Part shown: positions 1,520-35,396 of the stretch, in pieces
Layout of the letters: every line of letters starts with the position of its first letter
Position numbering within the stretch: position 1 is the first letter of the stretch
Assembly: GCA_977017575.1 (NCBI GenBank)
Contig: CDRNVI010000015.1
Span: 62,001-126,000, forward strand
DNA length: 64,000 nucleotides
Direction: 5' to 3'
DNA from: Paramoeba atlantica
Taxonomy: Eukaryota; Protista; Discosea
Position numbers and translations under genes: made by a program
Notes under the pieces: model-generated
What the model was told of the DNA's origin: nothing
Seen by the model: only the letters and a program-made list of their open reading frames with translations
The model's database searches: none

Positions 1520-1520
1520 C

Positions 1521-4020: not shown

Positions 4021-4150
4021 AATTTGGGATATTTCCATGTGCTTCGCCCGATGTAAATATTTTATAAAGGCAAAAAATACTTTACATCCTTTGATTCCTA
4101 GCGCGTAGTTTTTTCAAAGAACTTGTAAAATTATTATCATTCCGATTTTG

Positions 4151-6094: not shown

Positions 6095-6929
6095 AAATTG
6101 TCTCCGGTTACGAGGTTAGCTGGGCGGGGGGTTAGAGGGAAAAATCTCAGGTTTCTTTATATTTTATTCGTACTCTTCCGACACTACGTAATCTCCGTTC
6201 ATACTGCTGATGTGACACAAAGTTTATCTCAGTATGTTCATAGGTTTTGAGGAAGTCAAGGGTGCTTTTTTCTAAGGGTAGATACATTGTACGTCACACA
6301 TTTCTATATGTTATATTGGAAACGTGCCAAGATAGCTCAAATTAAATGGGCCAGTGTCGTATGATGTACTTGGTCAAAGATTATTAAACATTCTTGCTGA
6401 ATTGGAATAGTTGCTTAACGAATCATTTACGATTTCTTTATGAAACATATTTTTCTTATTTTTCCGAATTCGGAGATTTGGTCTTGCTGTTTGTTTTTCT
6501 GTCTTGCTCTTTGTCAGTAAAACGTTTTTTGATTCATTTTGTTAGGAAATATTTTTCCAGAACCTTGTTTTACCAAATTTTCATCTGATTAATACCAAAG
6601 CAGAAAAAACTGGATCCAGGAACTGAAATCTGAAGGTGATCAAATACTTTATTTACTTTCGTGTACCATTGTAAACTTTTTTTCTATTAAAAACTCTGAA
6701 ATGATTTTAAGTTCCAACATTCACTCTCCTGAGTTTTAGAAGATGATTTTGAGAGAAAAAAACTTTTATTTCTCAGAAAGTGAGCTTGCGTTGTGCATCT
6801 GTAAAGTAGTAAAACAAGGGAAAAATAAATTCATGACTATCTGAGAAAAACAAGTACTTGCTCTGTGACTGGTATTCCTAGACTTCCTTCTAGACTCATT
6901 GATTAAAACAATAGCATTCCTTACAGTAA

Positions 6930-8648
6930 ATGAGTCCACCACCGAGAGAAATTTTAACTTGCAGTTTAGGGGTCCTGGGTTCGTTGAGCTCTGTGCCTTA
7001 CTGGAATGCACTCACCACGAGAGATCAAGAAAACTCAACGCTTTATCGATGCGACGGGAAAGCATGTCGCCCAAGATTTATGGCGCTTTATCCCAGGCAT
7101 ATGCCATTGGAGAATTCTCCGGGCACCCAAAAGGTTTCATCTAATGAATGCGCCGATTGTGATCCTGAGCGTGATGCATGTAAAATTAGTAAGCCCCACG
7201 ACAGTACTTGTTTTTCTACACTTCGTTCAAATTTTCATAATCATGTCCATTTTGAACTTGATCTCCAGGAGAACTCAGATCAATTTGGCGGTCATTCAGC
7301 TACAGTCCAACAATTATGCCGTACAACTTGTGGTTCAGAATCATCCGAAAATGCGCGCAAGGGAAAGGAGCTCTCAAGATGGCATGAATGTATTACTTCA
7401 CAATACGGAGACCACTGTGGTGCACCACATGGTCTTCATTCTCGAACTTTGTTACCTGTTACGCTACCTGCTACGGCCGAACTAAGCTCAATGCCTAACC
7501 AGTTGGCCAGTCAGTCGCCTTTATCTATGTATGGTCTTGGAAAGGAGCTGTTTGCAAGTACCCGTGAGGTTGTACTAGACAATTTTCGATATTTTCTAGA
7601 AGAATGTGAACATCCTCAAGGCATACAGTTCTTTACAGAGGCAGACTCGATTTTTGGCGGTTTGCTCCCCGCCCTGACTGAAGCGGTTCAGGATGAAATC
7701 GGTCCCCTTGCCTTTATCGTGCGCGGTTCGATTAGGCCTTCTGTCACAGAGGTGTCTTCACATAATATTGTCTCGGAGATTAACGAGACAAGTCTCATGC
7801 AGACTGAAATCGCGCGGTGGATGAGTGCTGTTGAAATGAATAACTGCTCCACTCTGTATATGCCGATAGATCTCACAGCTTATGATGGGAAGATAGATGT
7901 GCTTCCCGGGTATACAAATCACATGATTGACACTACCCTGTCCAATGAATGGTTCTTACCATCGCTACTTGCTATTCCCTATCAAGTTGCGATGGATTGT
8001 AATTTAGGCCGGGAGCGTGCGACCGTACTGACACCTGGCTTGCCGAGCCGCCGTGTTTCATGCTTTCACGAGGTCGCTCATCAGTTGCAGTATTCTTCCA
8101 GCACTCGTATTCTACATTTGGACATGGCTTTTCCTCATCCTCGTGATTTATCTCACATTCGCCATGGTTCGAGAAAGGCAGAAGACTTTTTTCATTATTC
8201 ATCTTTCAACTGTAGACCTAAAACAGAGCAGACATACTCTCAATTGTGGTCAAGTCGGGGAATTGAAACATCTGTCATGGAAATAGAACATGTCCTGCGA
8301 TCGCGGCAATATGCACAGACTTATAGTCCGAAACGAGCAATATACATTTCTGCACAACCCTATCCTTTGCATCCACTAACCCCTTCGAAGTTTTTGGGTC
8401 TCGAATCAAATGCAGATCTCTCGTCCCTGAAGTTCAGTGAAGTTCCAGTTGCAGTCTGTGGCACAATGGGTTCCCAAACTGCTACATGGGTGAAAGAGTT
8501 GGCCGATGCTATCAATGGTTTGAGAAAAAACTCTTCTTTGCGGCGTAGCATCACTGGTCGAACGTACCCATATATGGAGCACGATGATTGGGTGGGATTG
8601 TTTGAGCACAGTGATGCGCTTATTGATGACTACAGTTCTACACATTGA
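6930..8648 (+). CDS. MSTO1: Misato/DML1 family (tubulin/FtsZ-related) protein
   Basis: REILTCSLGVLGSLSSVPYWN matches Misato segment II; DNFRYFLEECEHPQGIQFFTEADSIFGG matches the tubulin-like core. Confidence 0.8.
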   Translation: MSPPPREILTCSLGVLGSLSSVPYWNALTTRDQENSTLYRCDGKACRPRFMALYPRHMPLENSPGTQKVSSNECADCDPERDACKISKPHDSTCFSTLRSNFHNHVHFELDLQENSDQFGGHSATVQQLCRTTCGSESSENARKGKELSRWHECITSQYGDHCGAPHGLHSRTLLPVTLPATAELSSMPNQLASQSPLSMYGLGKELFASTREVVLDNFRYFLEECEHPQGIQFFTEADSIFGGLLPALTEAVQDEIGPLAFIVRGSIRPSVTEVSSHNIVSEINETSLMQTEIARWMSAVEMNNCSTLYMPIDLTAYDGKIDVLPGYTNHMIDTTLSNEWFLPSLLAIPYQVAMDCNLGRERATVLTPGLPSRRVSCFHEVAHQLQYSSSTRILHLDMAFPHPRDLSHIRHGSRKAEDFFHYSSFNCRPKTEQTYSQLWSSRGIETSVMEIEHVLRSRQYAQTYSPKRAIYISAQPYPLHPLTPSKFLGLESNADLSSLKFSEVPVAVCGTMGSQTATWVKELADAINGLRKNSSLRRSITGRTYPYMEHDDWVGLFEHSDALIDDYSSTH

Positions 8649-8901: not shown

Positions 8902-11900
8902 ATGAGTCGGAGCATTGCCCTGAACCTTGGGACACTAGGTGTCTGCTTGATTAGTCATCTGTTATCATGTGGTGTGTCTTGCGCGGAAAATTATAAAAAT
9001 ATCTTTGAAACACTAGAGGGCTTCCATACGACGCACGAAACTTTGGATTCCACGCACGAATTCTTACATTCCGATGCAGCAACGGGTCGTCATACTTCAT
9101 TGCGATACAATGTCACGAAATGCGATTCGCAGCGTTATCATACCCTTGTTGACGTTGAACGACTCTATTGTCATCATTCAGGACACGCAGAAATTCAATT
9201 TAAAAGCCAGTCAAGTCTTTCAAATTTTCTAGAGCAAGTATCTCCGGGCACAGTTTTGATGTCTCATCACAGTCTGAAATGTCAATCAAGTGGTGATCAT
9301 GTCTTATTCCGTGTACAGAGTATCGAGCTTCATCCAGAAAAGGAATGTCAAGTAGAGGTAATCGGGAACGAACTGCAGCCATTTGAGATCTTTCGGCACG
9401 CTGAAGTTGAGTTCGCCACCAATATGGCACATGCGCCCCCAAGTTCACAGCGTAAAGTCGAAAGCAAGTGTGGAAATCGTGCAAATTGGTACATGCCTGA
9501 GTTCCTAAGCGCCAATCCAATCCACCCTAACAATGACGCGGGTTCTTTTGGACCCTCTCAAGTTATGCAGCACATGAGTCATCCCGTGAATGCAATGCAG
9601 AGTATTCTTCGTCGTAGCCACTCAGTTGGTATGAGTAAGCTGACTGAATCTAACCTTACCGACAGTGTGTTAGGCAATCTCACCAACGGTGAAGCAGATA
9701 TCGATCAGCTGAGCTTTGCTGGATCTTGGAAAGTACCTTTTCCCTCTGATGTACTCTATATTTTTGCGAGTACGCCTCGTATGTTGTGTAAGGAGTGCTC
9801 CATACAACTATCCCCTACGATTAGATTTCGACTGCACATAAGAGACTATCAACTCGTGGAGTTTACACTCATCATGGAGTCGGTTGTGTATTTTAGTGTG
9901 GTTCCGTACATTGACTTTGATGCTATGCAAAAGTCATTTGCAAAAGATCTTGCTAAAATAACGCTACCCAGTGTACTGTTCACGGTAGGTGGGGTTCCCG
10001 TTGAATTGCAACCAAACATTAACTTGAGCACTTTTCTTGGGGTGCGTGCTAACGTAAAAGCTCGGGTAGGCTTCACGGTGGGTGTCTTTGGACATTTGAG
10101 AGGTGGGATTGCGTACGATCAGGTTAGCGGATTTCGATCTCCCTCCGCGGCCAAATTTGAAGCCGTACCACATGACTATGACTTTCGCATCGGGTCTCGC
10201 TGCCGGAGGTACGATGGTGCACTCCTGCACGATATAGCTAATGTAGAAGAATGCGCTGCGTCGTGCGAACAGGATGCAAATTGTAAACACTTTCAGTTTG
10301 ACCACACCGAACGGACTTGTGCGCTCAGTCGTGAGTGTGAGCTATTGTCCTCCCCTGATAGTGTGTTGTCGACGTTTTCATACTCACCTTGGGTTCGTCC
10401 CGATCCGCATCCAACGCTCTCTGCCATACTTTACCCAGCGATTATGCCTGAACTGAGCCTGGTCATTAATCGAATCGGTGGTCCCAACTTAGCACTTTGC
10501 GCTGGAACCAGTGTAACGGTATTTGCCCTGAATACTACAACCTTGTGCTCAGTTACATCTGTAAACACCGAAATTGACTTTCTGATAGGAGGTAGTTTAT
10601 ACTTGCGCATCGGCGGACATACGCTGATTAATCGAGAGGAGTATCTTAATCCAATATACACGGTGACCGTTCCGATACAAGGAGCTGTGAAGTATTGCTA
10701 CGATGATATACGACGCTCTTTTCTGCCACCAAAGGCCTCACCTCCGGAAGTGCCGGAGCCCCCACCCATTTTCAAGGTCACGCAAACAAAGTTTCCATCC
10801 TCGGATAGCACTTGGAACAAAATAATCGCATCTACTAAATTTTTTGGTAACGCTCTCATGTCGTTATTCTCAGTATTTGACCCTACTCAGAGGGCGGCAG
10901 AACAGCAGTCATTGAACTCTACAGCGATTCAACCATATCTTATGAACTTTTGGAATCCGCAACTTGGTAGTTATCCAAAAGTTCTACAAAGTGAGTCAGT
11001 TAACCTCATGTCAAGTAGCAGCTTGTTGCCCGATCAATCACCAAAAAATGTTTATTCCGATCAAGCGTTTTTCAGCGAATTGAAGAGTTCTTTTCTGGTT
11101 GAAAAGGTCGAAGATGAATTTGAAATTATTACATCTGAACAGTGCGAACATCAGCTTCCTCGCATGTCTCAAGCTCTATCTTTAGGAGATTCGTGGATGG
11201 GTTTATGTGAGAGCTTTCCATACCGTGTGGAAGTTCGTCTCATCTACATCGGTGGTAGTTCGAATCAATTTTCTTTTGTTGTTTCAGTGTTCGATGGGAC
11301 AACAACGCAAACATCTAGATCTCGATATTCTTTCAAGGAACAAAAAGCTTCTGAGACCACCAAAGTCATCCTACGACGCCTATCCGACACAGAATCTCAC
11401 AGCAATAGTTCTTACATTTTCTTTGGTAGTGAACTCTCGCTGCGAGTTGTCGAGAATGATATGTTGATTCTGGATCAGGCCCCGATAGTCTTGTCTGCCT
11501 GTTCGGATGTACTCATGCGGAAAAAGGAAAGTTTGGACTACATGGAACAAGGGAGCGTCCTTCATTTAGGACAAACTTTAGATTCTGGTCTCACACGCCT
11601 TACATTGAGCAGCCGGGGACTTGCAATTGAAACAAACTACGACAAAAATGATCCACACCATTTGCAATACTGGGAACAGAACGAAGGAGGGATCCCATTA
11701 AACGACAACTCGTCCAATGCGCTTTGGTTTTACCCGAAAAATGTAACTACCCCTGACATAAATCGCCTATATTTTGACACTGAAGGTAAGGTGCGGCTCT
11801 TAAATTCGAAAGGGAAAACGCGATATATTTTAAACCCTCCTTATGCATTGGGCGGACGATACTTGGTCTTGAATAATTGTTCTCTAGCGATTTATCGGGA

Positions 11901-13422
11901 TTTGCCTTTCTTGAAACCATTATGGGAGATTCGCGTAGCAGGGTGTCAGGAAAGTGGTCTAGTCAATGGCCATCGCGCATCTTTACGCCGATTGCCTCGT
12001 CAGAACACTAACATGCTGCACTTAGGTCAATGTGCATTTTCGAATTTGGATATCGAATCTCGGTCGCAGAATTCAGAGCAAGAGCCTTTAGATCTCAAAG
12101 ATCTCGTTGCGCGCCCTTCTACCGATCACATGGCTTTGTGCCTTCACCATGATGGCAATGTAGTTCTTACATCAAGAATGACCGGCGACATCCTATGGCA
12201 ATCCAACACCAGTGGCGCTGGTGGAAATGTGCTCATGCGAAAAGAAAATTATATCGAGATTCATCACATCGACGAAGCTCCAGAGCGCAAATCAGGTCGC
12301 ATTTGGTTATCTCATCATGTTTCTTGGATGTCTCATTTCCCTGGTTTAAGCATAAACACCGGTAACATCGCTTCAACCACAATGGCAAAGCCTATGATGC
12401 CCTTAATGTACACGCGATATCCTTTTCGTGATCGGTTTTGGATGTCAGTTGGCGATGCGCTCTACCCCGGGCAAACCATAATATCGTCTAGGACAATGTT
12501 AATCCATCAGTTGGATGGCAATGTTGTACTTTACGAGAAAAAGACTCGTCGAAAACTATGGAGTACGAACAATGTTGCGGAAAATACTACTGCTTTCGCA
12601 TTGCAAAACGACGGTACACTGGCTCTTTATGCAAGTACTGAGCAGAACTCTTCACGTGTGAGAAAACTTTTTGATGCTTTTCCTGTAGCAAATCGCAGAA
12701 CTGGATTTCGGGTGAAGTGGTTAGTCCTAGAGGACGATTGCCGACTTTTGGCACGCGGACTGGATGCTGAAGGAAAAATTTCATCCCAGTATTTGAGCAA
12801 TGAAACGTGTTCCAGTACCGAAGGCTTAACTCACAACAGTGCGGAAGCCTTTTTTCATCCGAATTTCGCAGCCAATCTTGATACCTCCGGTATTCTTGAA
12901 TCCGACGAGTACCTGCATTACGGTGAGACCATGTTTTCCACAAAGACTTGTACTGCTCTTCAATTGCTTCCTAGTGGCACGGTGTACTACAGCTCTCTTG
13001 GTTTGAAGCGTAAAATACTGCTCAATTTCACATTTACTCTGCCAGGGGGGGTGCCTCCCATTGCCATTCAAGCGAATGAAAACTTAAAGAATCCTACGGA
13101 TATTTTTGCAAAGAATAATGTAAAGCAATACGCCGGATCGGTAGAAACTAAGAACTCCACAACTAGGCGTTTGAATAGTATCAAATTAGGTAAAAGCTGT
13201 GTGTGGCTAATAGAGCAGCAGGACCGCACACAAAGAGAATTGCCGCTTTGGCAAAATGCGAAGACATGCCCATCGTTCTCGGTAGATATTTTTAGCCCTC
13301 CTAAAAAACAAAGTGTGCCTTCACAGAATCTTCTACCTCTTCCCATACAATGTGCACTTAAATCCTATAGAGTGGGTATCTTCCATGCAAATTCCACCTC
13401 TGTTACACCCGCGGGAACCTGA
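8902..13422 (+). CDS. Large secreted-type protein with a PAN/apple domain and bulb-type (B-lectin) repeats
   Basis: Hydrophobic N-terminal signal-like peptide; EECAASCEQDANCKHFQF...TCAL (PAN); HHDGNVVL...LWQSNT, QLDGNVVLY...LWSTN and LQNDGTLALY (B-lectin-like). Confidence 0.7.
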   Translation: MSRSIALNLGTLGVCLISHLLSCGVSCAENYKNIFETLEGFHTTHETLDSTHEFLHSDAATGRHTSLRYNVTKCDSQRYHTLVDVERLYCHHSGHAEIQFKSQSSLSNFLEQVSPGTVLMSHHSLKCQSSGDHVLFRVQSIELHPEKECQVEVIGNELQPFEIFRHAEVEFATNMAHAPPSSQRKVESKCGNRANWYMPEFLSANPIHPNNDAGSFGPSQVMQHMSHPVNAMQSILRRSHSVGMSKLTESNLTDSVLGNLTNGEADIDQLSFAGSWKVPFPSDVLYIFASTPRMLCKECSIQLSPTIRFRLHIRDYQLVEFTLIMESVVYFSVVPYIDFDAMQKSFAKDLAKITLPSVLFTVGGVPVELQPNINLSTFLGVRANVKARVGFTVGVFGHLRGGIAYDQVSGFRSPSAAKFEAVPHDYDFRIGSRCRRYDGALLHDIANVEECAASCEQDANCKHFQFDHTERTCALSRECELLSSPDSVLSTFSYSPWVRPDPHPTLSAILYPAIMPELSLVINRIGGPNLALCAGTSVTVFALNTTTLCSVTSVNTEIDFLIGGSLYLRIGGHTLINREEYLNPIYTVTVPIQGAVKYCYDDIRRSFLPPKASPPEVPEPPPIFKVTQTKFPSSDSTWNKIIASTKFFGNALMSLFSVFDPTQRAAEQQSLNSTAIQPYLMNFWNPQLGSYPKVLQSESVNLMSSSSLLPDQSPKNVYSDQAFFSELKSSFLVEKVEDEFEIITSEQCEHQLPRMSQALSLGDSWMGLCESFPYRVEVRLIYIGGSSNQFSFVVSVFDGTTTQTSRSRYSFKEQKASETTKVILRRLSDTESHSNSSYIFFGSELSLRVVENDMLILDQAPIVLSACSDVLMRKKESLDYMEQGSVLHLGQTLDSGLTRLTLSSRGLAIETNYDKNDPHHLQYWEQNEGGIPLNDNSSNALWFYPKNVTTPDINRLYFDTEGKVRLLNSKGKTRYILNPPYALGGRYLVLNNCSLAIYRDLPFLKPLWEIRVAGCQESGLVNGHRASLRRLPRQNTNMLHLGQCAFSNLDIESRSQNSEQEPLDLKDLVARPSTDHMALCLHHDGNVVLTSRMTGDILWQSNTSGAGGNVLMRKENYIEIHHIDEAPERKSGRIWLSHHVSWMSHFPGLSINTGNIASTTMAKPMMPLMYTRYPFRDRFWMSVGDALYPGQTIISSRTMLIHQLDGNVVLYEKKTRRKLWSTNNVAENTTAFALQNDGTLALYASTEQNSSRVRKLFDAFPVANRRTGFRVKWLVLEDDCRLLARGLDAEGKISSQYLSNETCSSTEGLTHNSAEAFFHPNFAANLDTSGILESDEYLHYGETMFSTKTCTALQLLPSGTVYYSSLGLKRKILLNFTFTLPGGVPPIAIQANENLKNPTDIFAKNNVKQYAGSVETKNSTTRRLNSIKLGKSCVWLIEQQDRTQRELPLWQNAKTCPSFSVDIFSPPKKQSVPSQNLLPLPIQCALKSYRVGIFHANSTSVTPAGT

Positions 13423-13885: not shown

Positions 13886-15010
13886 ATGCGCACCGAAGAT
13901 CTGGATGACGATGCGTGGGCTACAACAAGTGATGAGAATTCTAGAGAATCGATTTTAGATGACGAACACTGCTTTTATCACTATAAAGACATATCAATTA
14001 CTCAATGGGCAGAAAAATATCCAAATTTGACAGACGCATCAAGGAGTACACATCGTCGGGTGGGGGACATTCTGCTTAAAAGTGATAACGAATTAGCAAA
14101 GAATATATTTCAGAACATCGTTCGAGTAGCATCCTTTAAATTCGAAGATTCCGTTCTCATTCTTAATACCCTTTGGGCGATTTTACGTCTTTTCTCGACA
14201 GATTATACTATTTGGGCCTACAGGCGCTGTGTACTGAAAAGGTACATAAAGCATTTATCGAATGCTAACTCGCCAGGCTTCATCCGCACATTGCTTTGTG
14301 ATGAGCTCGAAATGTCTAAACGAAGTGCGGAAAGAACGCCTAAAAACTTTCAGATATGGAACGATCGCAAGGAACTTATTCAGCTTTTTGAGCTCAAAGC
14401 ATTAGTTAGCTGCAGCATGGACATAGAGTCGCTCATCCATGCAGAAAAAGTTTTGTGCACACAACTGCTCGAAATGGATCCGAAAAACTACCATGTATGG
14501 TCATACCGAAAATGGTGCGTACAACAGTACGATTCGACTGCCGGTGAACTGGATTACACCACACGGCTCATACAGCAAGATGTGTTCAATAATTCAGCCT
14601 GGACGTATCGATATTTTTTGATAACCTCTAATTTTAATATTTTATGTACCAACTTCAATAAAGAAATAGCAAGAGTAATCAGGAGTCTATGCGTTGCACC
14701 TGGGAATGAATCTTCTCTGTCATACGCTTTGGGACTGTGCATGGATAGATCTCAAAGCACCTACAATATTGTAAAGTGTCGACATTTCTATGAATGCTTA
14801 AAAAATTTCTGGAAAGGTGAGAAAATCTGTCACATTCATGAAGAGTTCTTGAATATCGAAGTCAAAACTGAGACAGATCGTTCTAATGAAGCAATCCTTT
14901 GGATGCTTCATGATTTGGCAAAAATACTGAATCTTTCAGACAGCACTTCATATTACGCTCAGATGCTTTGCGTAGAAAACAGTTTACATGCATCATTTTG
15001 GTTACCCTAA
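13886..15010 (+). CDS. FNTA: Protein farnesyltransferase/GGTase-I alpha subunit
   Basis: PFTA repeats PKNFQIWNDR, DPKNYHVWSYRKW, DVFNNSAWTYRYF and PGNESS. First ATG is 13886; the ORF track starts at GTG 13862. Confidence 0.85.
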   Translation: MRTEDLDDDAWATTSDENSRESILDDEHCFYHYKDISITQWAEKYPNLTDASRSTHRRVGDILLKSDNELAKNIFQNIVRVASFKFEDSVLILNTLWAILRLFSTDYTIWAYRRCVLKRYIKHLSNANSPGFIRTLLCDELEMSKRSAERTPKNFQIWNDRKELIQLFELKALVSCSMDIESLIHAEKVLCTQLLEMDPKNYHVWSYRKWCVQQYDSTAGELDYTTRLIQQDVFNNSAWTYRYFLITSNFNILCTNFNKEIARVIRSLCVAPGNESSLSYALGLCMDRSQSTYNIVKCRHFYECLKNFWKGEKICHIHEEFLNIEVKTETDRSNEAILWMLHDLAKILNLSDSTSYYAQMLCVENSLHASFWLP

Positions 15011-15039
15011 GAAAAACCGAATGAAATAGTATGAAGAAC

Positions 15040-15960
15040 CCTCTTCCTTTCCACCACTCCCCTATTTTCTTGCTCTCTCTACACCCCCACAAAAACAAAA
15101 CATCACCCTCCCCCTACCCCATATACATGCCCCCTCCCCCCCATGTCTGACACCCCCCACCCCACCCTCCACCTCCTCTCCGGTACCGCCAACCCCGACC
15201 ACGCGGTCTCCATCGCCCACGCCCTCTCCCTTCCCCCCCACCCCTGCCGCGTCTCCCGTTTCCCCAACGGTGAAATCGACATTGAGATTCTCACCGACCT
15301 CCACGGGGGGGACACCTTTGTGGTCCAAAGCACCTGCGGCCCCGACCTCAATGCCGCGCTGATGGAGCTGCTGCTGCTGCTGCACACCGCGAGGCTCTCC
15401 GGGGCGCGCCGGGTCACCGCGGTGGTCCCGTTTCTCGCCTACGCCCGACAGGACCGGCAGACGCGGCCCGGGGTGCCGATCTCCGCGAGTGCGGTCGCGC
15501 AGCTGATCCAGGCCATCGGGGTGGATCGCCTCGTAACGGTGGATCTGCACTGCGGGCAAATCCAGGGGTTCTTTCGAAACCTCCCGGTGGATAACCTCTG
15601 TGTGGATGGACCGTTTGTGCGGTACCTTAAAGATCGGGGGTTCGACCCCGAGACCGCGGTGGTGGTGTCCCCGGATGCGGGAGGGGTGGAACGGGCGACC
15701 CGGGTCGCGAACCTGTTGTATGCCCGTCACGTGGTGACGATTTTAAAAAGGCGCACGGAGGCGAGTAAGGTGCACTCGATGCAGATGGTGGGGGAGGTGA
15801 GGGGGTACACGTGTTATGTGATTGATGATATGGTGGATACGGGGTGTACGCTGGTGGGGGCGTCGAATTTGTTGCGCGCGAGGGGGGCGTGTGATGTCGT
15901 TGCGTGTGTGACGCATGGGATTTTCTCGGGGGATTGCTGTGAAACGCTGGAGAGGTGTGA
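15040..15960. other. GC-rich island, C-rich to G-rich switch (PRS 5' flank and CDS)
   Basis: C-runs begin in the non-coding flank at about 15040; G-rich from about 15600; boundaries approximate. Confidence 0.75.
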
Positions 15961-16141
15961 ACCCTTGCGTGAGGTCGTTGCAACCGATAGCATACCCCAG
16001 CAGGAGCACCAAAAACGGTGTTCGAAATTAAAAGTTTTACCGTTGGGTCCATTACTCGCTGAAACTGTGCGCAGAATTAATTCAGAACTGTCAGTCTCAG
16101 ATAGAACGGCGGTATTTAATCAACGGAATTCGCAATTGTAG
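15143..16141 (+). CDS. PRS: Ribose-phosphate pyrophosphokinase (PRPP synthetase)
   Basis: RFPNGEI, PFLAYARQDR, VDLHCGQIQGFF, VSPDAGGVERA and IDDMVDTGCTL motifs. Confidence 0.97.
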   Translation: MSDTPHPTLHLLSGTANPDHAVSIAHALSLPPHPCRVSRFPNGEIDIEILTDLHGGDTFVVQSTCGPDLNAALMELLLLLHTARLSGARRVTAVVPFLAYARQDRQTRPGVPISASAVAQLIQAIGVDRLVTVDLHCGQIQGFFRNLPVDNLCVDGPFVRYLKDRGFDPETAVVVSPDAGGVERATRVANLLYARHVVTILKRRTEASKVHSMQMVGEVRGYTCYVIDDMVDTGCTLVGASNLLRARGACDVVACVTHGIFSGDCCETLERCEPLREVVATDSIPQQEHQKRCSKLKVLPLGPLLAETVRRINSELSVSDRTAVFNQRNSQL

Positions 16142-16877
16142 TTCTACTATGATTGTGTATGTAGGCCTTTTTCTTTCTGGTATCCTTGGGCCATTATCCA
16201 TGGTTGCATTTCACAGGTTTTGTAATGGGTACACACTCTTGTAAAAACAAGTTGGATCACGAATCTTTACTGGGCGTTGACGAAGCAGAATGGGGCATCA
16301 GAAAGTAACGTATTAGGTGTTGTACCGGGTTAATCTCTAATCAGTGATCGGTTTTCGCAATATTAGGGATATTAACCCACAACGAAAAATAGGAGCCTTT
16401 ACGCAGTTTTTCAGATTCATGTACTCATGTATCTATTTCAGATTCAATACCTAAGAGACGGGCCATATTATGGATGAAACTTAAAATACGGCAATCTATC
16501 GAAAAAAAATCCAAAAATCTCAAAGCATCCCGAAATCAAAGTTTTAGAGTTTAACGCGCATCTTGGTCGCACGTCATGTTTATACGAAGAAAATGAAAAA
16601 TCTGGAATCCCGAACGTCGGAAAAACGCGAATTATAACGGAATTATAGAAATATTTAGCATAACACTTCGTCCATTCTTTAATAATTTGGGTGACGTTTT
16701 ATGGATGTACAGTATTCATTTTATTAATGTTCCTTGTCTCCACATTTTTTACTTTTTTATTCGCACTACATTTCCCTCAATGAGAGTCAGAAATCTATGA
16801 GTCCGAATATAATTGAACCACATGCTGTTTATCTACAGAACGCCGAGAATTAGGTGTTCCCACGAATCTCATTTTTG

Positions 16878-18370
16878 ATGACCTTGGAAAGGACAGGTTG
16901 GGATATTCCAGACACTTTAGATGACTGGCTCCCGAGAATTTTAGAAAATGGGTGCAGCCAAGAGAAATGTGGAGACATAGTAGGAGATTTCGGCGAAGAA
17001 GTGGTCTCTTTACTTCCAAAATTTTTACCGGCGCCAATTAGCATACCTTCGTGGAATTTGTCAAGTGACAAAGACAAAGAAACACGTGAGCACATGTTTC
17101 GCGAAACTGCTGAAAGTGTACTGCTTGACTTGTATAAAAACACTGATGAGGAGCTTTTGCACATCCTTATTAGAATACTTGATAACTACACAAATATTAA
17201 GGAGGACACCGAAAAGCGTCATCTCTTGCCAGTTTATATCGCAGAATGCACAGAAGCCTTGGGGATTGAGCGGTGCGAACTTGTTGACGCAATTTTCAGA
17301 TTCCCTGGTGAGATTCTTCTATCTCTTTTGGTAGATTTTATGAAGCTGGATGTGTACAGTGATAATACAGAACCAAGCCCTTCACGAGGTCCCACAGCAC
17401 ATTTCAAGAGAGGAAAGGAATTGGGCTTTCATACTGAAAAGGCTTTACATCGCCGATTAACCTTGAAGGCCAAGGCCTTGCAAGCACTAGAGCAACCGGA
17501 AAAATTTTTAATTCATGACACCTCTAACTCGGCATCCATAGGTCAAAAGAAAGTCTTGACAAAAGGAAAAGATCATGTTCGATTTGATTTGCCTGCTCCA
17601 ACCTCTGCAAATCTTGGAAGAAACCAGTGTTTACCTGTTGCTGAATTACCTGAGTGGACGCGCGATGCCTTCGGGTCTATTACTTATCTGAATACCATTC
17701 AAAGTAAAGTATTTTGCACAGCATACGAAACTGACGAGAATATGCTTGTATGTGCTCCGACAGGTGCCGGCAAAACACTGATCGCACTTCTTGTTATTCT
17801 CCGGCAAATGAAACATAGTCGAAAAATGGATGAAAAATTTCTCAATGATTTCAAAGTGGTTTATCTAGCTCCCATGAAGGCTCTCGTATCAGAAATGGTT
17901 GACAACTTCTCCTCCCGTCTCAAAAGGTATGGGATTGTAGTTAAAGAACTCACTGGAGATATGCAGCTTACAAAGAAACAAATTGAGGAGACGCAAATAA
18001 TCGTTTCCACCCCCGAGAAGTGGGATGTCATAACAAGGAAAACGTCGGATAATCCTTTTTTATCCACTTTGCGCGTTCTAATTTTGGACGAAGTACATCT
18101 CCTAAATGATGAGCGTGGTCCCGTACTGGAATCGATTGTTGCGCGCACATTGCGTCTCGGGGATATTGGGGATGCTGAAGTCCGCATCGCTGCTTTAAGT
18201 GCAACATTGCCGAACTACGAAGACGTTGCACGATTCCTGCGCGTTGATTCCTCGATGCATTTACACGTGTTTGGTCCTGAATACCGTCCTGTACCGTTGA
18301 GTACATCGTATATCGGAATTCATTCCTCTCTTCCCGAACAGGAAAAAAGGCGCGTAATGGAGCGCATCAC
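16878..18370 (+). CDS. ASCC3: ASCC3/Slh1 Ski2-like helicase, 5' part (interrupted by insertion)
   Basis: CAPTGAGKT, ILDEVHLL, ALSATLPN and RPVPL motifs of the first RecA domain; the frame stops at TAG 18372-74 at the insertion junction. First ATG is 16878. Confidence 0.85.
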
Positions 18371-18805
18371 GTAGTGTTTTATCATGCACTTATAGTGCAG
18401 AGATTAGCTCACCATGTCCTTATCCCGCATAAGACGGGTGGATCATGTGAGGTTTCGTCCTCGCCGGAGGTGTGCGGGTGCGGAGAGCTGGCGTCCCAGG
18501 TGCAGAGAGCTCGGTTGTCATGTGCAGGTGCAGAGAGCCGGATGCGTAATCCCCATATTACAGTTTCGGGGGCAATCCGGGTGCAGAGAGCTGCGACAGA
18601 GCCGAGGTGCGGAGAGCTGGGCGACCGCCAGGTGCAGAGAACCGAGTCTCGTCGGCGGAGGACACGTCTAGTGGTCCTCAAGGGAGGCCACCGTGACGCA
18701 TGGCCCTCTCGGAGAGGAAAAAGACAAGTCGAAAAAAGCCGAGAGGGGGAAGCACACTCACTCCAGGGGAGTGAGTCGGGGAGGGGTGAAGTGGTGAAAG
18801 CGCGT
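18371..18805 (+). mobile_element. ~430-bp interspersed element in ASCC3, possible GT-AG intron (18371-18800)
   Basis: Non-helicase sequence between ERIT and HISEALYKGKQVLVFVHAR; six GGTGCRGAGARC motifs; 3' hairpins; CGT at both junctions; homologous copy at 1521-1759. Confidence 0.85.
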
Positions 18806-21800
18806 CCCATATTTCAGAAGCTCTGTATAAAGGGAAGCAAGTTCTCGTGTTTGTACACGCCAGACGTCACACAGTACTGTTAGCCAGTCATATTCGCGAA
18901 ACCTTGCTTGAGAAAAAACAAGAAGGCTTATTTCAAGATGAGACCTTTCTGGATCAAATTGGTAAATGCGTGAAACGACTATCTTCTAAAGAGCTACAAG
19001 AACTCGCCCTTTATGGCATTGCTTTTCATCATGCTGGAATGCTTCGCACAGATCGCAACGCCGTTGAAGGCTTGTTTCGATCAAAAGCACTACGGGTACT
19101 GGTCTGTACTGCAACATTGGCTTGGGGTGTTAATCTACCTGCGCATACCGTAATTATCCATGGAACTGAAATTTATGATGCGCGACGAGGGGGATACGTA
19201 CATCTTTCTGCTCTTGACGTTACTCAAATATTCGGTCGGGCGGGGCGTCCACAATACGATACAACAGGGCATGGTATAATCATTACAAGTGAACGGGAAA
19301 TACATCAATACCTACGGCTGCTGGCGCATTCGCTCCCGATCGAATCAAGACTACATCGATCCCTTCCCGATCATCTCAATGCTGAAATTCATGCTGGCAC
19401 GGTTGGTAACATTCCAGAAGCTGTTCAATGGCTGGAATATACATATTTCTGGCAACGTCTTCAGAAAAATCCTTTAAGGTACGGTGTGAACATTTCTGAT
19501 CTTCGTCGGGACCGCGACTTGACAAAATATAGATATGAATTGATGTCAGGAGCGGCCAAACAACTTGCAAAGTCTCGTATGATCCGATACAGTGAAGATA
19601 CTGGCAAGGTGGACTGTACTGAAGTTGGGCGTATAGCCTCCTATCTCTACTTGAGCTATTCAAGTATAGATATTTTTAATAATCTTCTCTCTCAATTTGA
19701 ACTCGAGAACAAAGCATTTGTGGAAGAGGGAGATGTGTTCAATGTAATTGCTTGTTCAATTGAGTTTTCACAGATACGCGTACGAATTGAAGAGGAAGTT
19801 GATCTACAAAAAATGTACTCGCAGTTGCCAGCGTCTGTCCGACGAATTAGTGTACGACGTGAGAGTGCGGACGATAGCACTTCTCAGTGGAAAGTTGTGC
19901 TTCTCATGAAATGCTATATATCCAGACTAGTGCCGTCGGAGCACTCAATTGCAAGTGATATGACCTATATCACCCAAAATGCGGGACGCGTAGCTCGTGG
20001 TCTCTACGAAATAGAGGCTCACAAGGGGCATCCGCATACAGCATTACTTTTTTTCAACATTGTCAAATCATTAGAACGAAAGTGCTGGGAAGACATTGAC
20101 CATCCATTGCGGCAGTATGAAAAGGTGCCTCTGACTCAATCAGTAATTCGGTATCTCGACCAGAGGAGACCGAGCATAGAGGATTTAATCGCAATGGGTT
20201 CGAACGACATTGGAGATTTGATTCACAATCGTCGGTTAGGAGCGGTGGTAAAGCAAATGGCGTTGCACTTCCCTGCAGTTGCAGCTTCGGTTGAAGTCTT
20301 TCCTATTACGCGTACAGTTTTGCGCTTAAAGATTACTATCACGCCAAATTTTGTCTGGTCTACTCAATATCACGACGCCACAGACAACTGGTGGCTAACG
20401 GTTAGTGACGATCAATGCGAAACAATACTGCATCAAGAAACAGTTCGTTTCAATATTCATGATGTCATAAAAGCGAAATCAATGTATGTGAACTGTACTA
20501 TTCCTGTTCATCCTGAAAATGAACGTTTTCTTGTGAGCATGCATAATGAGAGATGGGTCGGTGCCTCGGAAGTTGTTCCTTTTACTTTATCCCGGCTTGT
20601 TTTACCCGACGATAAAACGATTCGCACTAAACTCTTGAAGCTTCGTCCCATTGGAGTATACGTGCTTTCATCCAGGTTACAGAAGCTCTACGATTTTGCT
20701 TTCTTTAATTCAATCCAAACTCAGTGCTTTCATGCGTTCTATCACCAAAATGACAATATCTTTCTGGGAGCTCCAACAGGTAGTGGGAAAACCGTGTGTG
20801 CTGAACTGGCTATGATACAGCTACTTCAAAGTCCTAAACTTCATCGTGGAAAAATAGTTTACATTGCCCCACTCAAGGCTCTAGTTCGAGAGCGTTTGAA
20901 AGACTGGTCAGCTCGATTCGAGAAGAAGTGTCGGTTTTCGGTCATTGAATTAACCGGTGACAAAACGCCGGACCTTGCCGCGATCCATTCAGCAGATATT
21001 ATTTGCACCACGCCTGAAAAATGGGATGGAATTACGCGGAGCTGGAAAAGTCGACAGTACACTACGGCAGTCCGACTAGTTATCTTTGACGAAATTCATA
21101 TGTTAGGAGGTGATCGAGGGCCTATTCTCGAGGTGCTTGTATCACGTCTTCGGTACATATCTTGGCATCAAAAGAGTAACATTCGACTCATTGGGTTGTC
21201 GACTGCAGTTGCTAATCCAACAGATATGGCGTTATGGTTAGGCATAGCGCGGCCGAACCAGATCTTTAATTTTGATCCGAGTGTCCGCCCGGCTCCAATG
21301 CGTTGTCACGTTGCTGGTTTCCCAGGAGTTCATTACTGTCCTAGAATGTCTAGGATGAATAAGCCGACGTATGAAGCAATAGTGGAGAAGAGCCCGACGA
21401 AGCCAGTACTTGTATTCGTTTCTTCACGAAGACAAACACGACTTACCTCAATGGCATTAATAAACCACATGTTACAAGAAGGAAAGAATACATTGTTTTT
21501 ACGCATGAATTCGAATGAGCTTCGCGCTGCAGTAGGCCGCGCACAGGACTCATACCTTCAACATGGTTTACAATTTGGCGTTGGCATGCATCACGCGGGG
21601 CTGCTTGAATCAGATCGGATTCTGGTTGAAATGCTTTTCCGAAGTGGGAAACTTCAAATTCTTGTGTGCACATCTACGTTAGCATGGGGCGTCAACTTTC
21701 CTGCATATCTAGTAGTAATTAAGGGAACCGAGTATTATGATGCAAAGACGAAATCGTATATTGACTTTCCTATCACTGATATTCTGCAAATGATGGGTCG

Positions 21801-23211
21801 TGCAGGCAGACCACAGTTTGACAAAGAAGGGATAGCGCAGATCTTTGTAGCCGAATCTAAAAAAACGTTTTACAAACGCTTCCTTTATGAACCTTTTCCT
21901 GTCGAATCATCGCTCCATGAATGCCTGTCCGTTCATTTTAATGCCGAAATAGTAGCAGGAATAATATGCACATCAGAAGACGCGGTGGATTATCTGACTT
22001 GGACCTACCTTTTCCGTAGATTACTGAGAAATCCTAGATATTATGGACTGCAGGAATCTAATCCGGAGAACGTAACGAATTACTTGGCTGACCTGGTTAG
22101 ATCAATATTCAATGAGCTGGAAAACTCTTTTTGTATCTGCATGGCAGATTCCACCGAACAGGCTCCGTCTCGGTATACTCTTGCGCATGTGTCGCCTACA
22201 TTGCTAGGCAAGCTGTGCAGTTATTATTATTTGCATTATCGAACGGGTTCATTATTTGAAACAAATTGCCAGGCTGACACATCCCGAATGTCAATAATAG
22301 AAATCGTTTCAAAGTCTGAAGAATTTAAGGATTTTCCTTTGCGCCACAATGAAGATGCACGCAACGCTGAACTAGCGGAAGCAATGAATCTTACTAAAGA
22401 AAACTGCGCCTATGATTCTCCTCACATGAAAGTATACTTACTTTTATTAGCTCATATTCAACGAATAACGTTACCAATTGCCGACTATTATACGGATACC
22501 CGAACTATGTTGGAGAATTTGGTGCGCATCATGCAGGCTATGGTAGATATTTGTGCGAAAAATGGTCTTTTATTCACAGCAATACGCGTGATGAACATAA
22601 TGCAAAGCGTCGTACAAGCACAGACATGGAAAAGTAGCAGCCTATTACAAGTTCCACATATTAAAAAGGAAATTTTATCGAATTTAAAGGTAGAAGGCAT
22701 TACAGAAATATGTCAGCTTGCCAACGGTACTTCAGCTGAAAAACGGATCGTTCGCTCCATTTTGTCAAAAAGAACCTACAAACTATCATCTGAACAAATA
22801 GATGAAAGTATGGAAGTCATAAACCGTCTCCCTCTGCTGGAGGTGTTTCTTAAGAGTGATACTCAAGTGGACGATGGAGTATGCACCGTTACCTTAGACG
22901 TTACCCTTTTTCGTTTAACTCCTACACATCCCCACGTACATGCTCCGCACTATCCTCGAAAGAAGGATGAACAATTTTGGGCTATTGTTGGGTGTGATCA
23001 AACGGGCGAACTTATTGCTCTGAAGCATGTTCATCGAATACGGCGGCGGCGTCACTTTCAACTTGTCTTTGATTGGGATGAGAGTTGGGATCAAACTTTT
23101 GTTATTGGGGATGAGCTAATTCACAAATATAGACTGTATTTCTATCTTATTTCAGACTCCTACATTGGACTGGACTTGCAATACGGTTTCGAAGTGACAC
23201 GTCTTTCGTAG
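18801..23211 (+). CDS. ASCC3: ASCC3 helicase, 3' part (rest of cassette 1, Sec63, full cassette 2, Sec63)
   Basis: QVLVFVHAR, HHAGML, TLAWGVNLPA, GAPTGSGKT, FDEIHML and HYCPRMSRMNKP...KPVLVFVSSRRQTRLT (ASCC3-type rather than Brr2); no stops over 4.4 kb. Confidence 0.9.
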
Positions 23212-24696: not shown

Positions 24697-24877
24697 TACT
24701 ATCCCCCGTATTACTATCCTAGCGTTGCCTGGTTTTGGGAAAAAGCAACGCTAGGAGGGGGGGTCCAAAAACAAATCGCCGCTTCGCGGCAAGAGAGTCT
24801 TGAAGAGACAGTCTAAAAAGCAACGCTAATGAGGGGGGGGGGGTACTGAGGCAACGCTAGGATAGGGGGGGATAGTA
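24697..24877. mobile_element. MITE-like TIR element, family B copy 1, TA-flanked
   Basis: Outer arms TACTATCCCCC / GGGGGATAGTA; inner perfect 16-bp arms CTATCCTAGCGTTGCC (24714-29) / GGCAACGCTAGGATAG (24850-65); second copy at 63720. Confidence 0.8.
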
Positions 24878-28068: not shown

Positions 28069-29619
28069 ATGTTCAAGAGGAATTTCGTTCCCCAATTTTT
28101 CGACCGATTTCTAAATATTCCCCGGCGAGCATATTGTTCAAAGACATCGTGCAGTACCCAGCCTCTAGCTAATGCAGAAGCAAGTACTGTCTTGTCTAAG
28201 GGTGGTGGCAGCTCCAAGGCAATGCATACGTGTATACCAACGTGGCTTACGGAAATGATTGAAGCATCGAAAAAGCTAAAGCGAGACATGAGAAGTCAAG
28301 ACTTGCACTTTTACGATACATCTGAATGGCAAAGAAGGGCTCACTCGTTTGACAATGAAGTGTGGGATCCCAATAACATGACAATGGTTGCCAAACAGCG
28401 ACTATGTTTGGGACAGCCCCATAAAGAATACACGCTGATTGGAGAGATTTTTAGTTTTCCCGATCAGGAGGATAATCCTGTAGTCAACAATCCTGGTAGA
28501 CCTGCAAAGCTTTGGTGGGACCACTCCAGTCCGACCCAAAAAGTTCTAGTTCAATTATCGGATCATTTTCCACCTTTGTTGTGGCCCGGAGTGATTCCCC
28601 AGTGCGAGTCACTTCTAAATTTATTCACAGAGTTTCTTGACATTGACGCTAAGCACATGAAGCTTAACATCGATGAATATGAATCCAAACAAAAGTCCTA
28701 TGAAGAGCAGCTTGGTACCTCGATTAGTTTTGAGACTAGCAACAAGCATCAGCTACGAGATCTTTTTATGAGAGACCTACGAAACAAGGACCCCGCTGAC
28801 TTTCGTCTGGATTGGGAGAAGGACTTCAGCATGTATTTAGGCACAGCAGATAATTTTCGAGTTATAGAAGAAAGGTGGAAAAGAAATCCCTTCTGTTTTG
28901 GATGGCCGCTCATGCTCTCCGATGGAAATCATTATATGGAAAATCAGCCCCTGCATTGTTGTGCGTTTCGCACGATAATGAGCAAATCTATTCTATCCTT
29001 CCAATCGCGAGTAGATTTACAACTGGAATCTCTTGCCACTTTGCGATCGACGCAAAACAACGATGAAGAAAATCCGTCAGATATTCTTCTAGAGGTCCCA
29101 GTTTTAGCTCACATTAACTACCAACAAAATAGGAGGCTGTGTGGGGGTCCGAAGTTTGTTCAACGATACAACAAGATTATGGGAACTGATTTTCCAGAGG
29201 ACACTCCCGTTGATGTGCTAGCTGCTCTTTGTCGGGAGGTTATCTGTAAATCTCCACGAGACGTATACAAAGAAGTAGAGTTTCTTGCGAAGTTGCTGGA
29301 GAAGGGAGTGCAGCCAGATCGAACTCCGCGACTCCCTACCGTCCTTCACAGTACCACGAAACTTGTTGGTCAAATAAGCTACAACGTGGTTTATCTCGCA
29401 TGTATGGAGTACGATAGATGGGTAGAGGACATTTACAAGAAGTTTTCTTCGCATCCTGAGCCAGTGCTACGAATAGCCCTCGCAAAAGGTGCATCCATAG
29501 TTATGAGACCCGACCTTGTAGAAGAAATGATACAGCTCGAGAAAGATGACGAAGTACAAGCATCTATGAAAAAGTTGATAGACATGGGTAAAAGTAATAC
29601 GGAAGCCAACAGGAAATGA
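28069..29619 (+). CDS. Hypothetical protein, possibly mitochondrial
   Basis: 516-aa ORF; N-terminus MFKRNF...IPRRAYCS resembles a presequence; no family recognised. Confidence 0.65.
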   Translation: MFKRNFVPQFFDRFLNIPRRAYCSKTSCSTQPLANAEASTVLSKGGGSSKAMHTCIPTWLTEMIEASKKLKRDMRSQDLHFYDTSEWQRRAHSFDNEVWDPNNMTMVAKQRLCLGQPHKEYTLIGEIFSFPDQEDNPVVNNPGRPAKLWWDHSSPTQKVLVQLSDHFPPLLWPGVIPQCESLLNLFTEFLDIDAKHMKLNIDEYESKQKSYEEQLGTSISFETSNKHQLRDLFMRDLRNKDPADFRLDWEKDFSMYLGTADNFRVIEERWKRNPFCFGWPLMLSDGNHYMENQPLHCCAFRTIMSKSILSFQSRVDLQLESLATLRSTQNNDEENPSDILLEVPVLAHINYQQNRRLCGGPKFVQRYNKIMGTDFPEDTPVDVLAALCREVICKSPRDVYKEVEFLAKLLEKGVQPDRTPRLPTVLHSTTKLVGQISYNVVYLACMEYDRWVEDIYKKFSSHPEPVLRIALAKGASIVMRPDLVEEMIQLEKDDEVQASMKKLIDMGKSNTEANRK

Positions 29620-30009
29620 CACTATTTTTAGAAAATTACTTTTGCAACTAACTAAAGTAATCGTTCTCTAGTTTTATATGGGCAGTAATCTCACATTCCC
29701 TGGTTTGCAGTGGTGTTTTTTTTCACTGAACCTTTCACATTTCTTTAAGTAATTATAAGTTATGTATTTTGAGAGAGCATGATCGATTGTTAGAATATCC
29801 GATGATTACATCCTTTCACTGTAGATCAACCATGCTTTACACAAGTGCCCATAAAGTATCTGTGAGTGCATTGCAGTATGTAAATAAGCGAGATCTGAGG
29901 TAGCTCCTTTATCTATTGTACTACAATTACTTCCATCAGATCACAATATCGACCGCTCGATCACCTGTGTTACATAATCGTCGTATCGTAGGTAGTTGTA
30001 GTCATTCTT

Positions 30010-30954
30010 ATGGGAGCGGCACATTCGCATGAAATATCGCCCCTTTCCTTGGCTGCGATCCGTGCCACGACTCTTGCTCTGCCCTGTAGTCACGATGAAG
30101 CTAAACGACCGTGGCAGCCGGAGGACTCACAATCTTCGTTTTGCCGTCTTCGCCAGGCGTATCTGGGGCTTGACTTTCGTTCTCTTTACAGCCACACACG
30201 GTCCTGGGTAGTAAAGTCGTGCGCCAGGGGACACCAACAAGACGCGTCGAGAGCTGATACAGTTTGTTCCCTGCTAGCGAATTGCATACCCACACATTCC
30301 CGGACATGTAGAAAAATTCTACAATCTCAAGAATATTTGGGTTTGTCGGCGTTCGTAAAATTCCCTTGTCAACTCACCATCGAAAGGGAGGCAAGACGAT
30401 TATCAATTGATTCCTTAGTTGCAACTCATCGCATGAACCGTGAAATAAATAAAAAACAAAAGAGAACGGACCTTGCCTCCTGTCGTAGCACAGGGTCCAG
30501 CCCCACTGAGCCTGTTTCCTCTATGACATCATTGCTTCCACCGACTCAACATTCATATTTTGATATTCATGACACACGTAACCCGCCCACCTTGTTGGGA
30601 GCACAGGAATTGTTTCATCATGGAAATCCACTTATTAAAGGGGTTCGCGCCACGTCTTCGTGTCGGGAACGTGGTTCCTGTGGTTCGACTAATAAGGCGC
30701 TCGGAGGTATCAAGAAAGCCAATAAGCTCGACTCCTACTTTACACAAGGATTTGGTACAAGGGAAAGCCATCAAATTCAAACCAGCTTGACTGCATCAGA
30801 ACAATTAAGGACGAATCTGGTCGTCCAGAAATTAACAGCGAGCAGATTGGCTATGGTTGGTTCATCCAGTAAAACATTGAGAATTCAAACCTGGATCACA
30901 GAAGTCAGTAAAAGTTGCCCTACCACCGCGGTAACAGATGTTCCGCCTTTATAA
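30010..30954 (+). CDS. Hypothetical protein with N-myristoylation-like start
   Basis: 314-aa ORF starting MGAAHS (MGxxxS). Confidence 0.55.
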   Translation: MGAAHSHEISPLSLAAIRATTLALPCSHDEAKRPWQPEDSQSSFCRLRQAYLGLDFRSLYSHTRSWVVKSCARGHQQDASRADTVCSLLANCIPTHSRTCRKILQSQEYLGLSAFVKFPCQLTIEREARRLSIDSLVATHRMNREINKKQKRTDLASCRSTGSSPTEPVSSMTSLLPPTQHSYFDIHDTRNPPTLLGAQELFHHGNPLIKGVRATSSCRERGSCGSTNKALGGIKKANKLDSYFTQGFGTRESHQIQTSLTASEQLRTNLVVQKLTASRLAMVGSSSKTLRIQTWITEVSKSCPTTAVTDVPPL

Positions 30955-35233: not shown

Positions 35234-35396
35234 TATGAGTATTTTTTTTGAAGTAGGTTACTCCACTGTTCAATTAAAAACAAACATGTGTTCAAGCGAT
35301 TCGCTGGACGCACGCGGCAATATTATCTTTACTATCAGACATGTTAGACTAACTACTTACTATGAGAAAAACTTAACATTTATTTCGGAAAATTTT

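Follow-up and report, generated by a model that had tools for sequence, protein, structure and literature searches.

The interrupted ASCC3 gene

The 64,000-nucleotide stretch of DNA analysed here (the window) contains 29 non-overlapping open reading frames (ORFs) of at least 200 amino acids, all on the plus strand, and only two minus-strand ORFs, both of which overlap plus-strand ORFs. Two of the 29 are the halves of a single gene, ASCC3 (Table 1). The others are unsplit, so that nothing in this genome points to frequent introns. The plus strand thus carries a single cluster of genes that all run in one direction, and it opens with a gene (523-1347) for a homolog of splicing factor 1/branch-point-binding protein with SF1 helix-hairpin and KH domains; SF1 is a splicing component common to cis- and trans-splicing. 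Two tandem paralogs of 654 and 648 amino acids lie at 1916-3880 and 4148-6094; they share nucleotide blocks of 71-83% identity spaced 2214 nt apart, and the second of them has a weak RNase_T exonuclease match.

Table 1. Coordinates of the interrupted gene, the insert and the related copy in the window (L numbers denote the loci compared)
Feature	Position	Strand	Description	Basis
ASCC3	16854-23211	+	interrupted after ...ATC AC	
ASCC3 upstream coding part	16854-18370	+	N-terminal region and RecA1 of cassette 1	Pfam DEAD 2.9e-34; alignment of 13 homologs
Upstream ORF	16854-18374	+	closes with in-frame TAG at 18372-18374	
Candidate 5' splice site GT	18371-18372	+	host-derived; overlaps the in-frame TAG 18372-18374 if the insert is retained	
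Insert	~18373-18808	+	3'-truncated copy (reference ~1-448) of a ~580-nt interspersed repeat	98% identity to L002, L003 and L004
Candidate 3' splice site AG	18799-18800	+	5-8 nt inside the truncated end of the element	
Element-derived CGCGTCCC	18801-18808	+	same bases in all family copies	
ASCC3 downstream frame	18802-23211	+	no stops	
ASCC3 downstream coding part	18809-23211	+	RecA2 of cassette 1, Sec63, whole cassette 2	Pfam; homolog alignment
Second copy in the window	1417-1752	-	in an intergenic region, antisense to the cluster, with an internal deletion	5' module (1570-1752, 77%) fused to 3' module (1417-1520, 87%)

The host gene encodes a two-cassette Ski2-like helicase in which Pfam recognises DEAD, Helicase_C, two Sec63 and SNRNP200 wHTH domains. 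These domains, the best database matches (annotated ASCC3) and a tree position among kinetoplastid ASCC3 proteins identify it as a dual-cassette Ski2-like helicase of the ASCC3/Slh1 type. The upstream part, with its GKT, DEVH and SAT motifs intact, ends at ...ATC AC, and the original prediction was right that the gene is interrupted at this point and that a retained insert creates the TAG which closes the upstream ORF. The downstream frame is shifted by one base relative to the upstream ORF; it has every helicase motif intact and carries Helicase_C, the two Sec63 domains, a second DEAD/Helicase_C pair and the SNRNP200-type winged helix. Together the two coding halves (5.9 kb) are free of stops and frameshifts.

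Removal of 18371-18800 (430 nt, GT...AG) would join ATC AC|C GCG TCC CAT and restore the frame, giving ...MERI-T-ASHISEAL.... When the protein so obtained was aligned by MAFFT with kinetoplastid homologs and those of a diplonemid, an amoebozoan, an animal and a plant (13 in all), its two pieces were collinear with exactly one junction residue and no gap, as expected from the proposed frame restoration. All 13 homologs are continuous across the insertion point. Every other kinetoplastid sampled, the highly reduced Perkinsela included, retains ASCC3. No second ASCC3 from the host organism was found in the protein collection at the lengths searched, and among its proteins of 138-437 and 808-2570 residues there were no near-identical junction-spanning fragments or empty-site products.

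A maximum-likelihood tree built on the downstream 1469 residues places the ASCC3 protein, on a long branch of its own, in a 100/100 clade with the Prokinetoplastina strain PhM-4, Perkinsela sp. CCAP 1560/4 and a Perkinsela-like ENA sequence. The closest homolog is that of PhM-4 (56% identity), and identity to Perkinsela sp. CCAP 1560/4 is 45%. This placement and these identities indicate that the source of the sequence is a prokinetoplastid and not Perkinsela sp. CCAP 1560/4.

Boundaries of the insert

The copy in ASCC3 is without the last ~135 nt of the element, the 3' hairpin module included. Its homology to the family begins at A18373/G18374 and ends at 18805-18808, so that the boundaries are fixed to within 18373-18375 on the left and, because of a C run, 18805-18808 on the right. 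Past 18808 the other copies run on as CTGCTTCAGCGAC..., where the window has ATATTTCAGAAGC, which is ASCC3 coding sequence. Since the family copies share sequence only from A18373/G18374 onwards, the GT at 18371-18372 belongs to the ASCC3 flank. The ends of the insert were originally equated with the ends of the element; instead, the copy is truncated at its 3' end, the candidate GT comes from the host and the candidate AG is internal to the element. If 18371-18800 were spliced out, the element-derived CGCGTCCC would be exonised and would encode part of T-A-S-H.

The duplicated (C)GT that had been read as a target duplication has another origin, as the second CGT (18803-18805) falls within AAAGCGCGTCCCC, a sequence found in every family copy. 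Cutting out exactly the bases homologous to the element leaves a reconstructed empty site of ...CATCACGT(A)(C)CCATATT..., which is in frame in three forms, ATC ACG TCC CAT (ITSH), ATC ACG TAC CAT (ITYH) and ATC ACG TAT ATT (ITY-I). The ITSH sequence proposed as the likely ancestral allele is thus in frame as claimed, although it is one of three equally possible forms and does not follow from a duplication. The 430-nt excision gives the exact length of the homologs, from which the reconstructed empty sites fall 1-2 residues short. As many as 22 indel events separate the ASCC3 protein from its closest relative, which makes such a difference unremarkable; alternatively, a small deletion of the target during insertion could account for it. 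The RNA of the insert is predicted to be strongly folded, with its own ends brought together (z = -3.4).

The repeat family

The family was found by searching the protein collection with the translated stop-free frame through the insert, and ten of the places found were fetched and compared. The search returned twelve matching gene calls, all from the ENA assembly ERZ24900291, at protein identities up to 94%; counting these matches and their cluster members, the family is present on at least 17 contigs of this assembly, which is from the same organism. Within the window, BLAST finds a sole partial relative of the insert at 1570-1752 on the minus strand. This is the 5' module of the sister copy that had been noticed earlier.

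The family is a discrete repeat with copies of about 575-595 nt. Young copies at L002, L003, L004, L006, L007, L008 and L009 (16883-17461) are 97-99% identical, and older ones at L010 and L009 (9677-10114) are 87-91% identical. The 97-99% identical copies at other loci put the repeat nature of the insert, inferred at first from a single stretch of DNA, far beyond chance. The termini are A[T/G]TGTTTT...CTGTATCTTT. The constant end, A[T/G]TGTTTTATCATGCACTTATAGTGCAGAG, carries a small hairpin (GCACT-TAT-AGTGC). The other end reads ...AAGTACCAACAAGGTACAGAAACTGTATCTTT, and the module before it contains a perfect 12-bp hairpin (GGCAACGGGCAT...ATGCCCGTTGCC). The family has no inverted terminal repeats, and no target-site duplication flanks any copy compared.

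Several identities for the element were considered and set aside. Pfam recognises nothing in the long ORFs that run through the insert, and comparison of young with old copies gives Ka/Ks values of 0.7-1.2 in all three frames; these ORFs are therefore spurious and the family is non-coding. A self-splicing group I or group II intron or another Rfam RNA was rejected, as no match reached the gathering score in the insert, the window or nine related loci; matches in the insert itself were at chance level only (E above 3). No tRNA-like or tRNA-derived part was found in the insert. The TC...CTRR ends of a canonical Helitron are absent. A short subfamily defined by a truncation point in common with the L009a copy was also dismissed, since L009a runs on as diverged element sequence.

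The TGTTTT end is constant in all copies, and the opposite end has lost 135 nt in the ASCC3 copy, 9 nt in L006 and 4 nt in L008. Read on the complementary strand, the constant end is GATAAAACA, and neither a true poly(A) tail nor a duplication is seen. The GATAAAACA end together with the occasional shortening of the opposite end is what a retroposon might show. A rolling-circle element would also fit, given a hairpin ~10 nt from one end and the lack of inverted ends and duplication, but its canonical TC...CTRR ends are missing. The family is young and probably still active.

Genomic distribution and orientation

Other copies were looked for in coding sequences among the 11 loci (a sample of ~200 kb), and the ASCC3 copy is the only one of about 14 copies or fragments that lies in conserved coding sequence; recurrent insertion into genes was not found in this sample. 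No convincing long ORF runs across the reconstructed empty sites of other full-length copies. The sole exception, an ORF of 250 amino acids at L003, was measured over a nested insertion and not at the true end of the element. L011 is repeat debris, with only fragments among other repeats, and the L005 copy lies directly beside a fragment of a PIF1-like helicase, in a stretch rich in transposons.

Most intergenic copies are antisense to neighbouring conserved genes, namely those at L006, L007, L009 (two or more copies) and L010, the second copy in the window and probably those at L002 and L004. The ASCC3 copy, the single genic copy in the sample, lies in the sense orientation. The transcribed strand of the intergenic copies is almost always the pyrimidine-rich one, their purine-rich strand being antisense to the genes, which is opposite to the arrangement in ASCC3; the loci behind this bias are L006 10113-10673, L007 10125-10699, L009 9677-10745 and 16883-17461, L010 2601-3195 and window 1417-1752. 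The bias suggests either selection on orientation or an insertion bias linked to transcription.

Age and allelic state

Compared with the consensus of seven young copies, the ASCC3 copy differs at 3 of 435 positions, two of the differences being private, and it is as young as any member of the family. For so young a copy, intact coding halves are expected even in a dead gene. If the two private changes post-date the insertion, the neutral chance that 5.9 kb would stay intact is ~0.04-0.11, a rough estimate that assumes that 4-5% of substitutions make stops and that the indel-to-substitution ratio is 0.1. If they were instead inherited from an unsampled source copy, the age may be near zero and the argument from intactness collapses.

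The same locus is present in ENA contig ctg3992l (L001), with the insert in place and with junctions identical to those in the window. The two versions differ by 56 SNPs, all but 3 of which fall in 14151-18224 (L001 5305-9376), and by scattered single-base indels. The divergence of this 4-kb patch is ~1.4% (2.5% in its intergenic part), and SNP-free blocks of 5.3 kb and 10.9 kb lie on either side. The insert sits in a SNP-free block that starts 147 nt upstream of it. Its presence in two versions separated by 56 SNPs implies that the insertion is probably homozygous or fixed. That the patch ends so near the insert may be due to chance, or may mark a repair or loss-of-heterozygosity tract begun at the insertion site. 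The SNPs in the upstream exon (11 synonymous and 11 non-synonymous, 14 of the 22 at third positions) show past purifying selection; they lie outside the SNP-free block of the insert and predate it, and therefore say nothing about selection after the insertion.

The difference between 430 and 432 nt was considered as a sign of tolerance to indels and rejected, as the two extra bases are private to ctg3992l, a contig that also has ORF-breaking indels. Seventeen single-base indels are clustered at L001 19902-22593 (window 28747-31436) and one more lies in a C run (L001 3620, window 12465). They split ORFs that are intact in the window, of 1506 amino acids at 8902-13422 and 516 amino acids at 28069-29619. 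The contig appears to be locally unpolished, and the ORF-breaking indels look like consensus errors. Neither the junction pattern (with 0-15 bases between the flanks) nor the terminal 28-mer of the element occurs in JGI metagenomes, a result that is uninformative as the organism is absent there. A look-up of the haplotype seen in the window returned no record.

Splice signals

Cis-introns of kinetoplastids are confined to PAP1, DBP2B and RBP20; they have an almost invariant GTATG at the 5' end, A at -4 and usually T at -2, and they always have polypyrimidine tracts (PMC11613528). None is known in Prokinetoplastina (PMC11613528, PMC7859406): Perkinsela has no cis-introns and has lost cis-splicing (PMC11613528), and none was found in the free-living Papus and Apiculatamorpha (PMC7859406).

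The candidate donor in ASCC3, CATCAC|GTAGTG, has T at -4 and A at -2 and departs from the GTATG pattern. Pyrimidine runs in the insert do not exceed 7 nt and its best 30-nt window is 63% pyrimidine, whereas the best 30-nt windows of neighbouring true intergenic regions reach 70-90%. The last 100 nt are 28% pyrimidine, which bears out the earlier remark that the acceptor is purine-rich and has no polypyrimidine tract. The lack of such a tract in the insert argues also against spliced-leader addition for the downstream half. ASCC3 is not among the known intron-bearing genes, the homologs are continuous where conservation across species would be looked for, and the insert is recent, being 98% identical to dispersed repeats. 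What the insert does share with kinetoplastid cis-introns is GT...AG borders with the frame preserved, a match that chance would give about once in three.

This last figure comes from an enumeration of every GT in 18300-18440 against every AG in 18700-18900, which gives 18 stop-free, frame-restoring pairs. The nearest GTs (18371 and 18374) are 3 bases apart and the nearest AGs (18791 and 18800) are 9 bases apart, so that all four of their pairs share one phase and amount to a single coincidence with a probability of about 1 in 3. The frame restoration described originally is thus not beyond chance. The GT at 18374, which belongs to the element, would with AG 18800 leave a footprint of 6 nt that stays in frame at any site where this truncated copy inserted, a property that its truncation point had a one-in-three chance of conferring.

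Comparison with known systems

Introner elements are intron-generating transposons of Micromonas, Aureococcus, Symbiodinium, fungi and others. An Introner family is recognised by numerous introns of nearly the same sequence spread over unrelated genes, the splice sites lying at the ends of the element or next to them (Gozashti et al. 2022, PMC9860276). The insert resembles them in being a short non-autonomous repeat in coding sequence whose near-end GT...AG would give in-frame removal, and, as in some Introner families (PMC9860276), one candidate splice site comes from host sequence. Unlike Introners, only 1 of ~14 sampled copies of the ASCC3 repeat is genic, the canonical ends have no splice sites, the AG is internal and exposed by truncation, no target duplication is present, and splicing in ASCC3 is only putative. 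An Introner-like mechanism, as first proposed, is thus not supported for this family, whose full-length ends (A[T/G]TGTTTT...CTGTATCTTT) are not splice sites. The words Euglenozoa and kinetoplastid are absent from the text of the Introner survey (PMC9860276).

Kinetoplastid cis-introns (Kostygov et al. 2024, PMC11613528) share with the insert the GT...AG borders and a host gene for an RNA-interacting protein, and its 430 nt are close to the median of ~440 nt for the PAP1 intron (PMC11613528). Unlike them, the insert is in a different gene and in a different lineage, Prokinetoplastina, is very recent and not conserved, and is devoid of GTATG, A at -4 and a polypyrimidine tract.

RIME, NARTc and SIDER are short non-autonomous retroposons of trypanosomatids. 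The present family is like them an abundant short non-coding kinetoplastid repeat that is mostly intergenic, with a bias in orientation relative to transcription, one constant end and occasional truncation of the other; unlike in them, neither a poly(A) tail nor a target duplication nor the conserved 5' signature of 77-79 nt was seen. In its effect on the gene the insertion is like an ordinary disruption by a transposable element, in which a near-consensus young copy brings a premature stop and a frameshift into an intact conserved gene. There is no essential difference between the two, and the only oddity is the available GT-AG pair that restores frame and length.

Fate of the interrupted gene

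The locus is best explained as a young insertional null allele of ASCC3, present in both sampled sequence versions, and we put the probability of this reading at roughly 0.7. A 3'-truncated copy of the young, non-coding ~580-nt repeat has recently entered the linker between RecA1 and RecA2 of cassette 1, where it sets a TAG in frame right after the junction and shifts the downstream frame. We infer that the insert stays in the RNA, in which case the transcript would yield only a 506-residue N-terminal fragment and the allele would be null or severely hypomorphic. Both halves of the gene look intact, on this reading as there has been too little time for decay, and the frame-restoring GT...AG would be a coincidence of a host GT and an element-internal AG and not a property of the family. 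The recent knockout that had been offered as the alternative to an intron is accordingly the reading that the evidence favours. Against it stand the absence of stops and frameshifts from both coding halves with all helicase motifs intact, for which the neutral probability is low if the private substitutions post-date the insertion. The insert is moreover in both versions while no second ASCC3 was found and other sampled kinetoplastids keep the gene, and it is the 430-nt excision, not the slightly shorter empty sites, that matches the length of the homologs.

On a rival reading the insertion is on one allele only, and an intact empty-site ASCC3 allele, missing from the available assemblies, persists in the cell or the population and supplies the function. 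The assembly is built from long reads and is fragmented (contigs of 9-232 kb, with local single-base indel errors), the mosaic of SNP-dense and SNP-free blocks implies more than one haplotype or strain, and the repeat family is young and probably still active. However, the two versions behave as the arms of a heterozygous patch and both have the insert, and an empty-site or second ASCC3 product is missing from the protein collection at the lengths searched. We regard such a hidden intact allele as unlikely, though it fares slightly better than the other alternatives.

Slightly less likely again is a de novo spliceosomal intron, in which host GT 18371 or element GT 18374 would be used with AG 18800 and full-length ASCC3 would be made with I-T-A-S-H or I-T-Y-A-S-H at the junction. 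Such an intron would account for the restoration of the frame and of the exact homolog length, for the intactness of both gene halves, for the presence of the insert in both sequence versions and for the lack of another detected ASCC3 copy. The in-frame 6-nt footprint of GT 18374 with AG 18800 at any insertion site and the strong folding of the insert RNA, which would bring its ends together, are also in its favour. The signals themselves argue otherwise, as the donor reads GTAGT instead of GTATG, T takes the place of A at -4, a polypyrimidine tract is lacking and purines make up 70% of the acceptor region. The phase agreement is about a 1 in 3 event, a single copy in ~14 is genic, intactness weighs little in so young a copy, and the lineage, in which Perkinsela is without cis-splicing, has no known cis-introns. 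That a prokinetoplastid has just gained a functional ASCC3 intron from a truncated repeat, with neither a GTATG donor nor a polypyrimidine tract, is improbable, at about a tenth of our expectation.

It is much less probable still that the halves act as separate polypeptides, the downstream one arising by spliced-leader addition and an internal start, with either reassembly of the two or use of the C-terminal cassette alone. Trans-splicing cuts kinetoplastid genes out of polycistronic transcripts, and cassette 2 is complete in the downstream ORF. Against such a split gene, no polypyrimidine tract for spliced-leader addition lies in or after the insert, the first Met of the downstream frame is ~85 residues in, within RecA2 of cassette 1, and the break falls between the two RecA domains of one ATPase. 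An assembly artefact, whether a chimeric join or a misplaced repeat, is the least credible explanation of all, as the many single-base indel errors in the ENA contig are outweighed by clean junctions and by an insertion that is identical in two sequences 56 SNPs apart upstream.

As it stands, the insertion is an ordinary event in which a young repeat has entered a conserved gene. It provides a dated example of ASCC3 disruption in a group that otherwise keeps the gene in every sampled species. It also brings to light a repeat family not described before that has been active recently, in a prokinetoplastid whose genome is rich in transposons. If splicing were true, a repeat insertion would have created the first cis-spliced intron of a prokinetoplastid, and an intron gain would for the first time have been caught in the act in a eukaryotic lineage that is among the poorest in introns. 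The kinetoplastid spliceosome would then accept sites far from the GTATG/polypyrimidine pattern, which would bear directly on why cis-splicing has been retained.

Other mobile sequences

For a kinetoplastid, mobile-element genes are unusually abundant in this genome. At L005 and L008-L011 these include genes for Tc1/mariner-type DDE_3, IS1595-type and DDE_Tnp_4 transposases and for RVT_1 reverse transcriptases, an RNase H fragment and the PIF1-like helicase fragment, and several further repeat families recur from one locus to another. Two independent copies of the family, at L003 (3299/4240) and L005 (18366), are interrupted at one and the same internal position (reference 554, following CTAAGGAAAAAG), and at L003 a foreign segment of ~940 nt lies between the two broken parts; this position may be a preferred target of another mobile element. 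L003 is contig ctg3717c (23337 bp), in which the suffix c marks a circular contig. Its positions 1-1449 recur at 6723-8173 (99.9%), which implies a tandem unit of ~6.7 kb that contains a family copy and a gene for a 394-aa IS1595/Merlin-type DDE transposase (5861-7045).

Two further structures lie in the window. At 34851-35246, just upstream of an ORF at 35235-35975, inverted repeats of 41 nt (80% complementary) surround 314 nt, with direct repeats of 43 nt just inside, a structure that resembles a miniature inverted-repeat element. A palindromic 54-nt sequence (CCTAGCGTTGC...GCAACGCTAGG), a further dispersed short repeat, occurs at 24716-24769 and 63808-63861, in opposite orientations and 39 kb apart.
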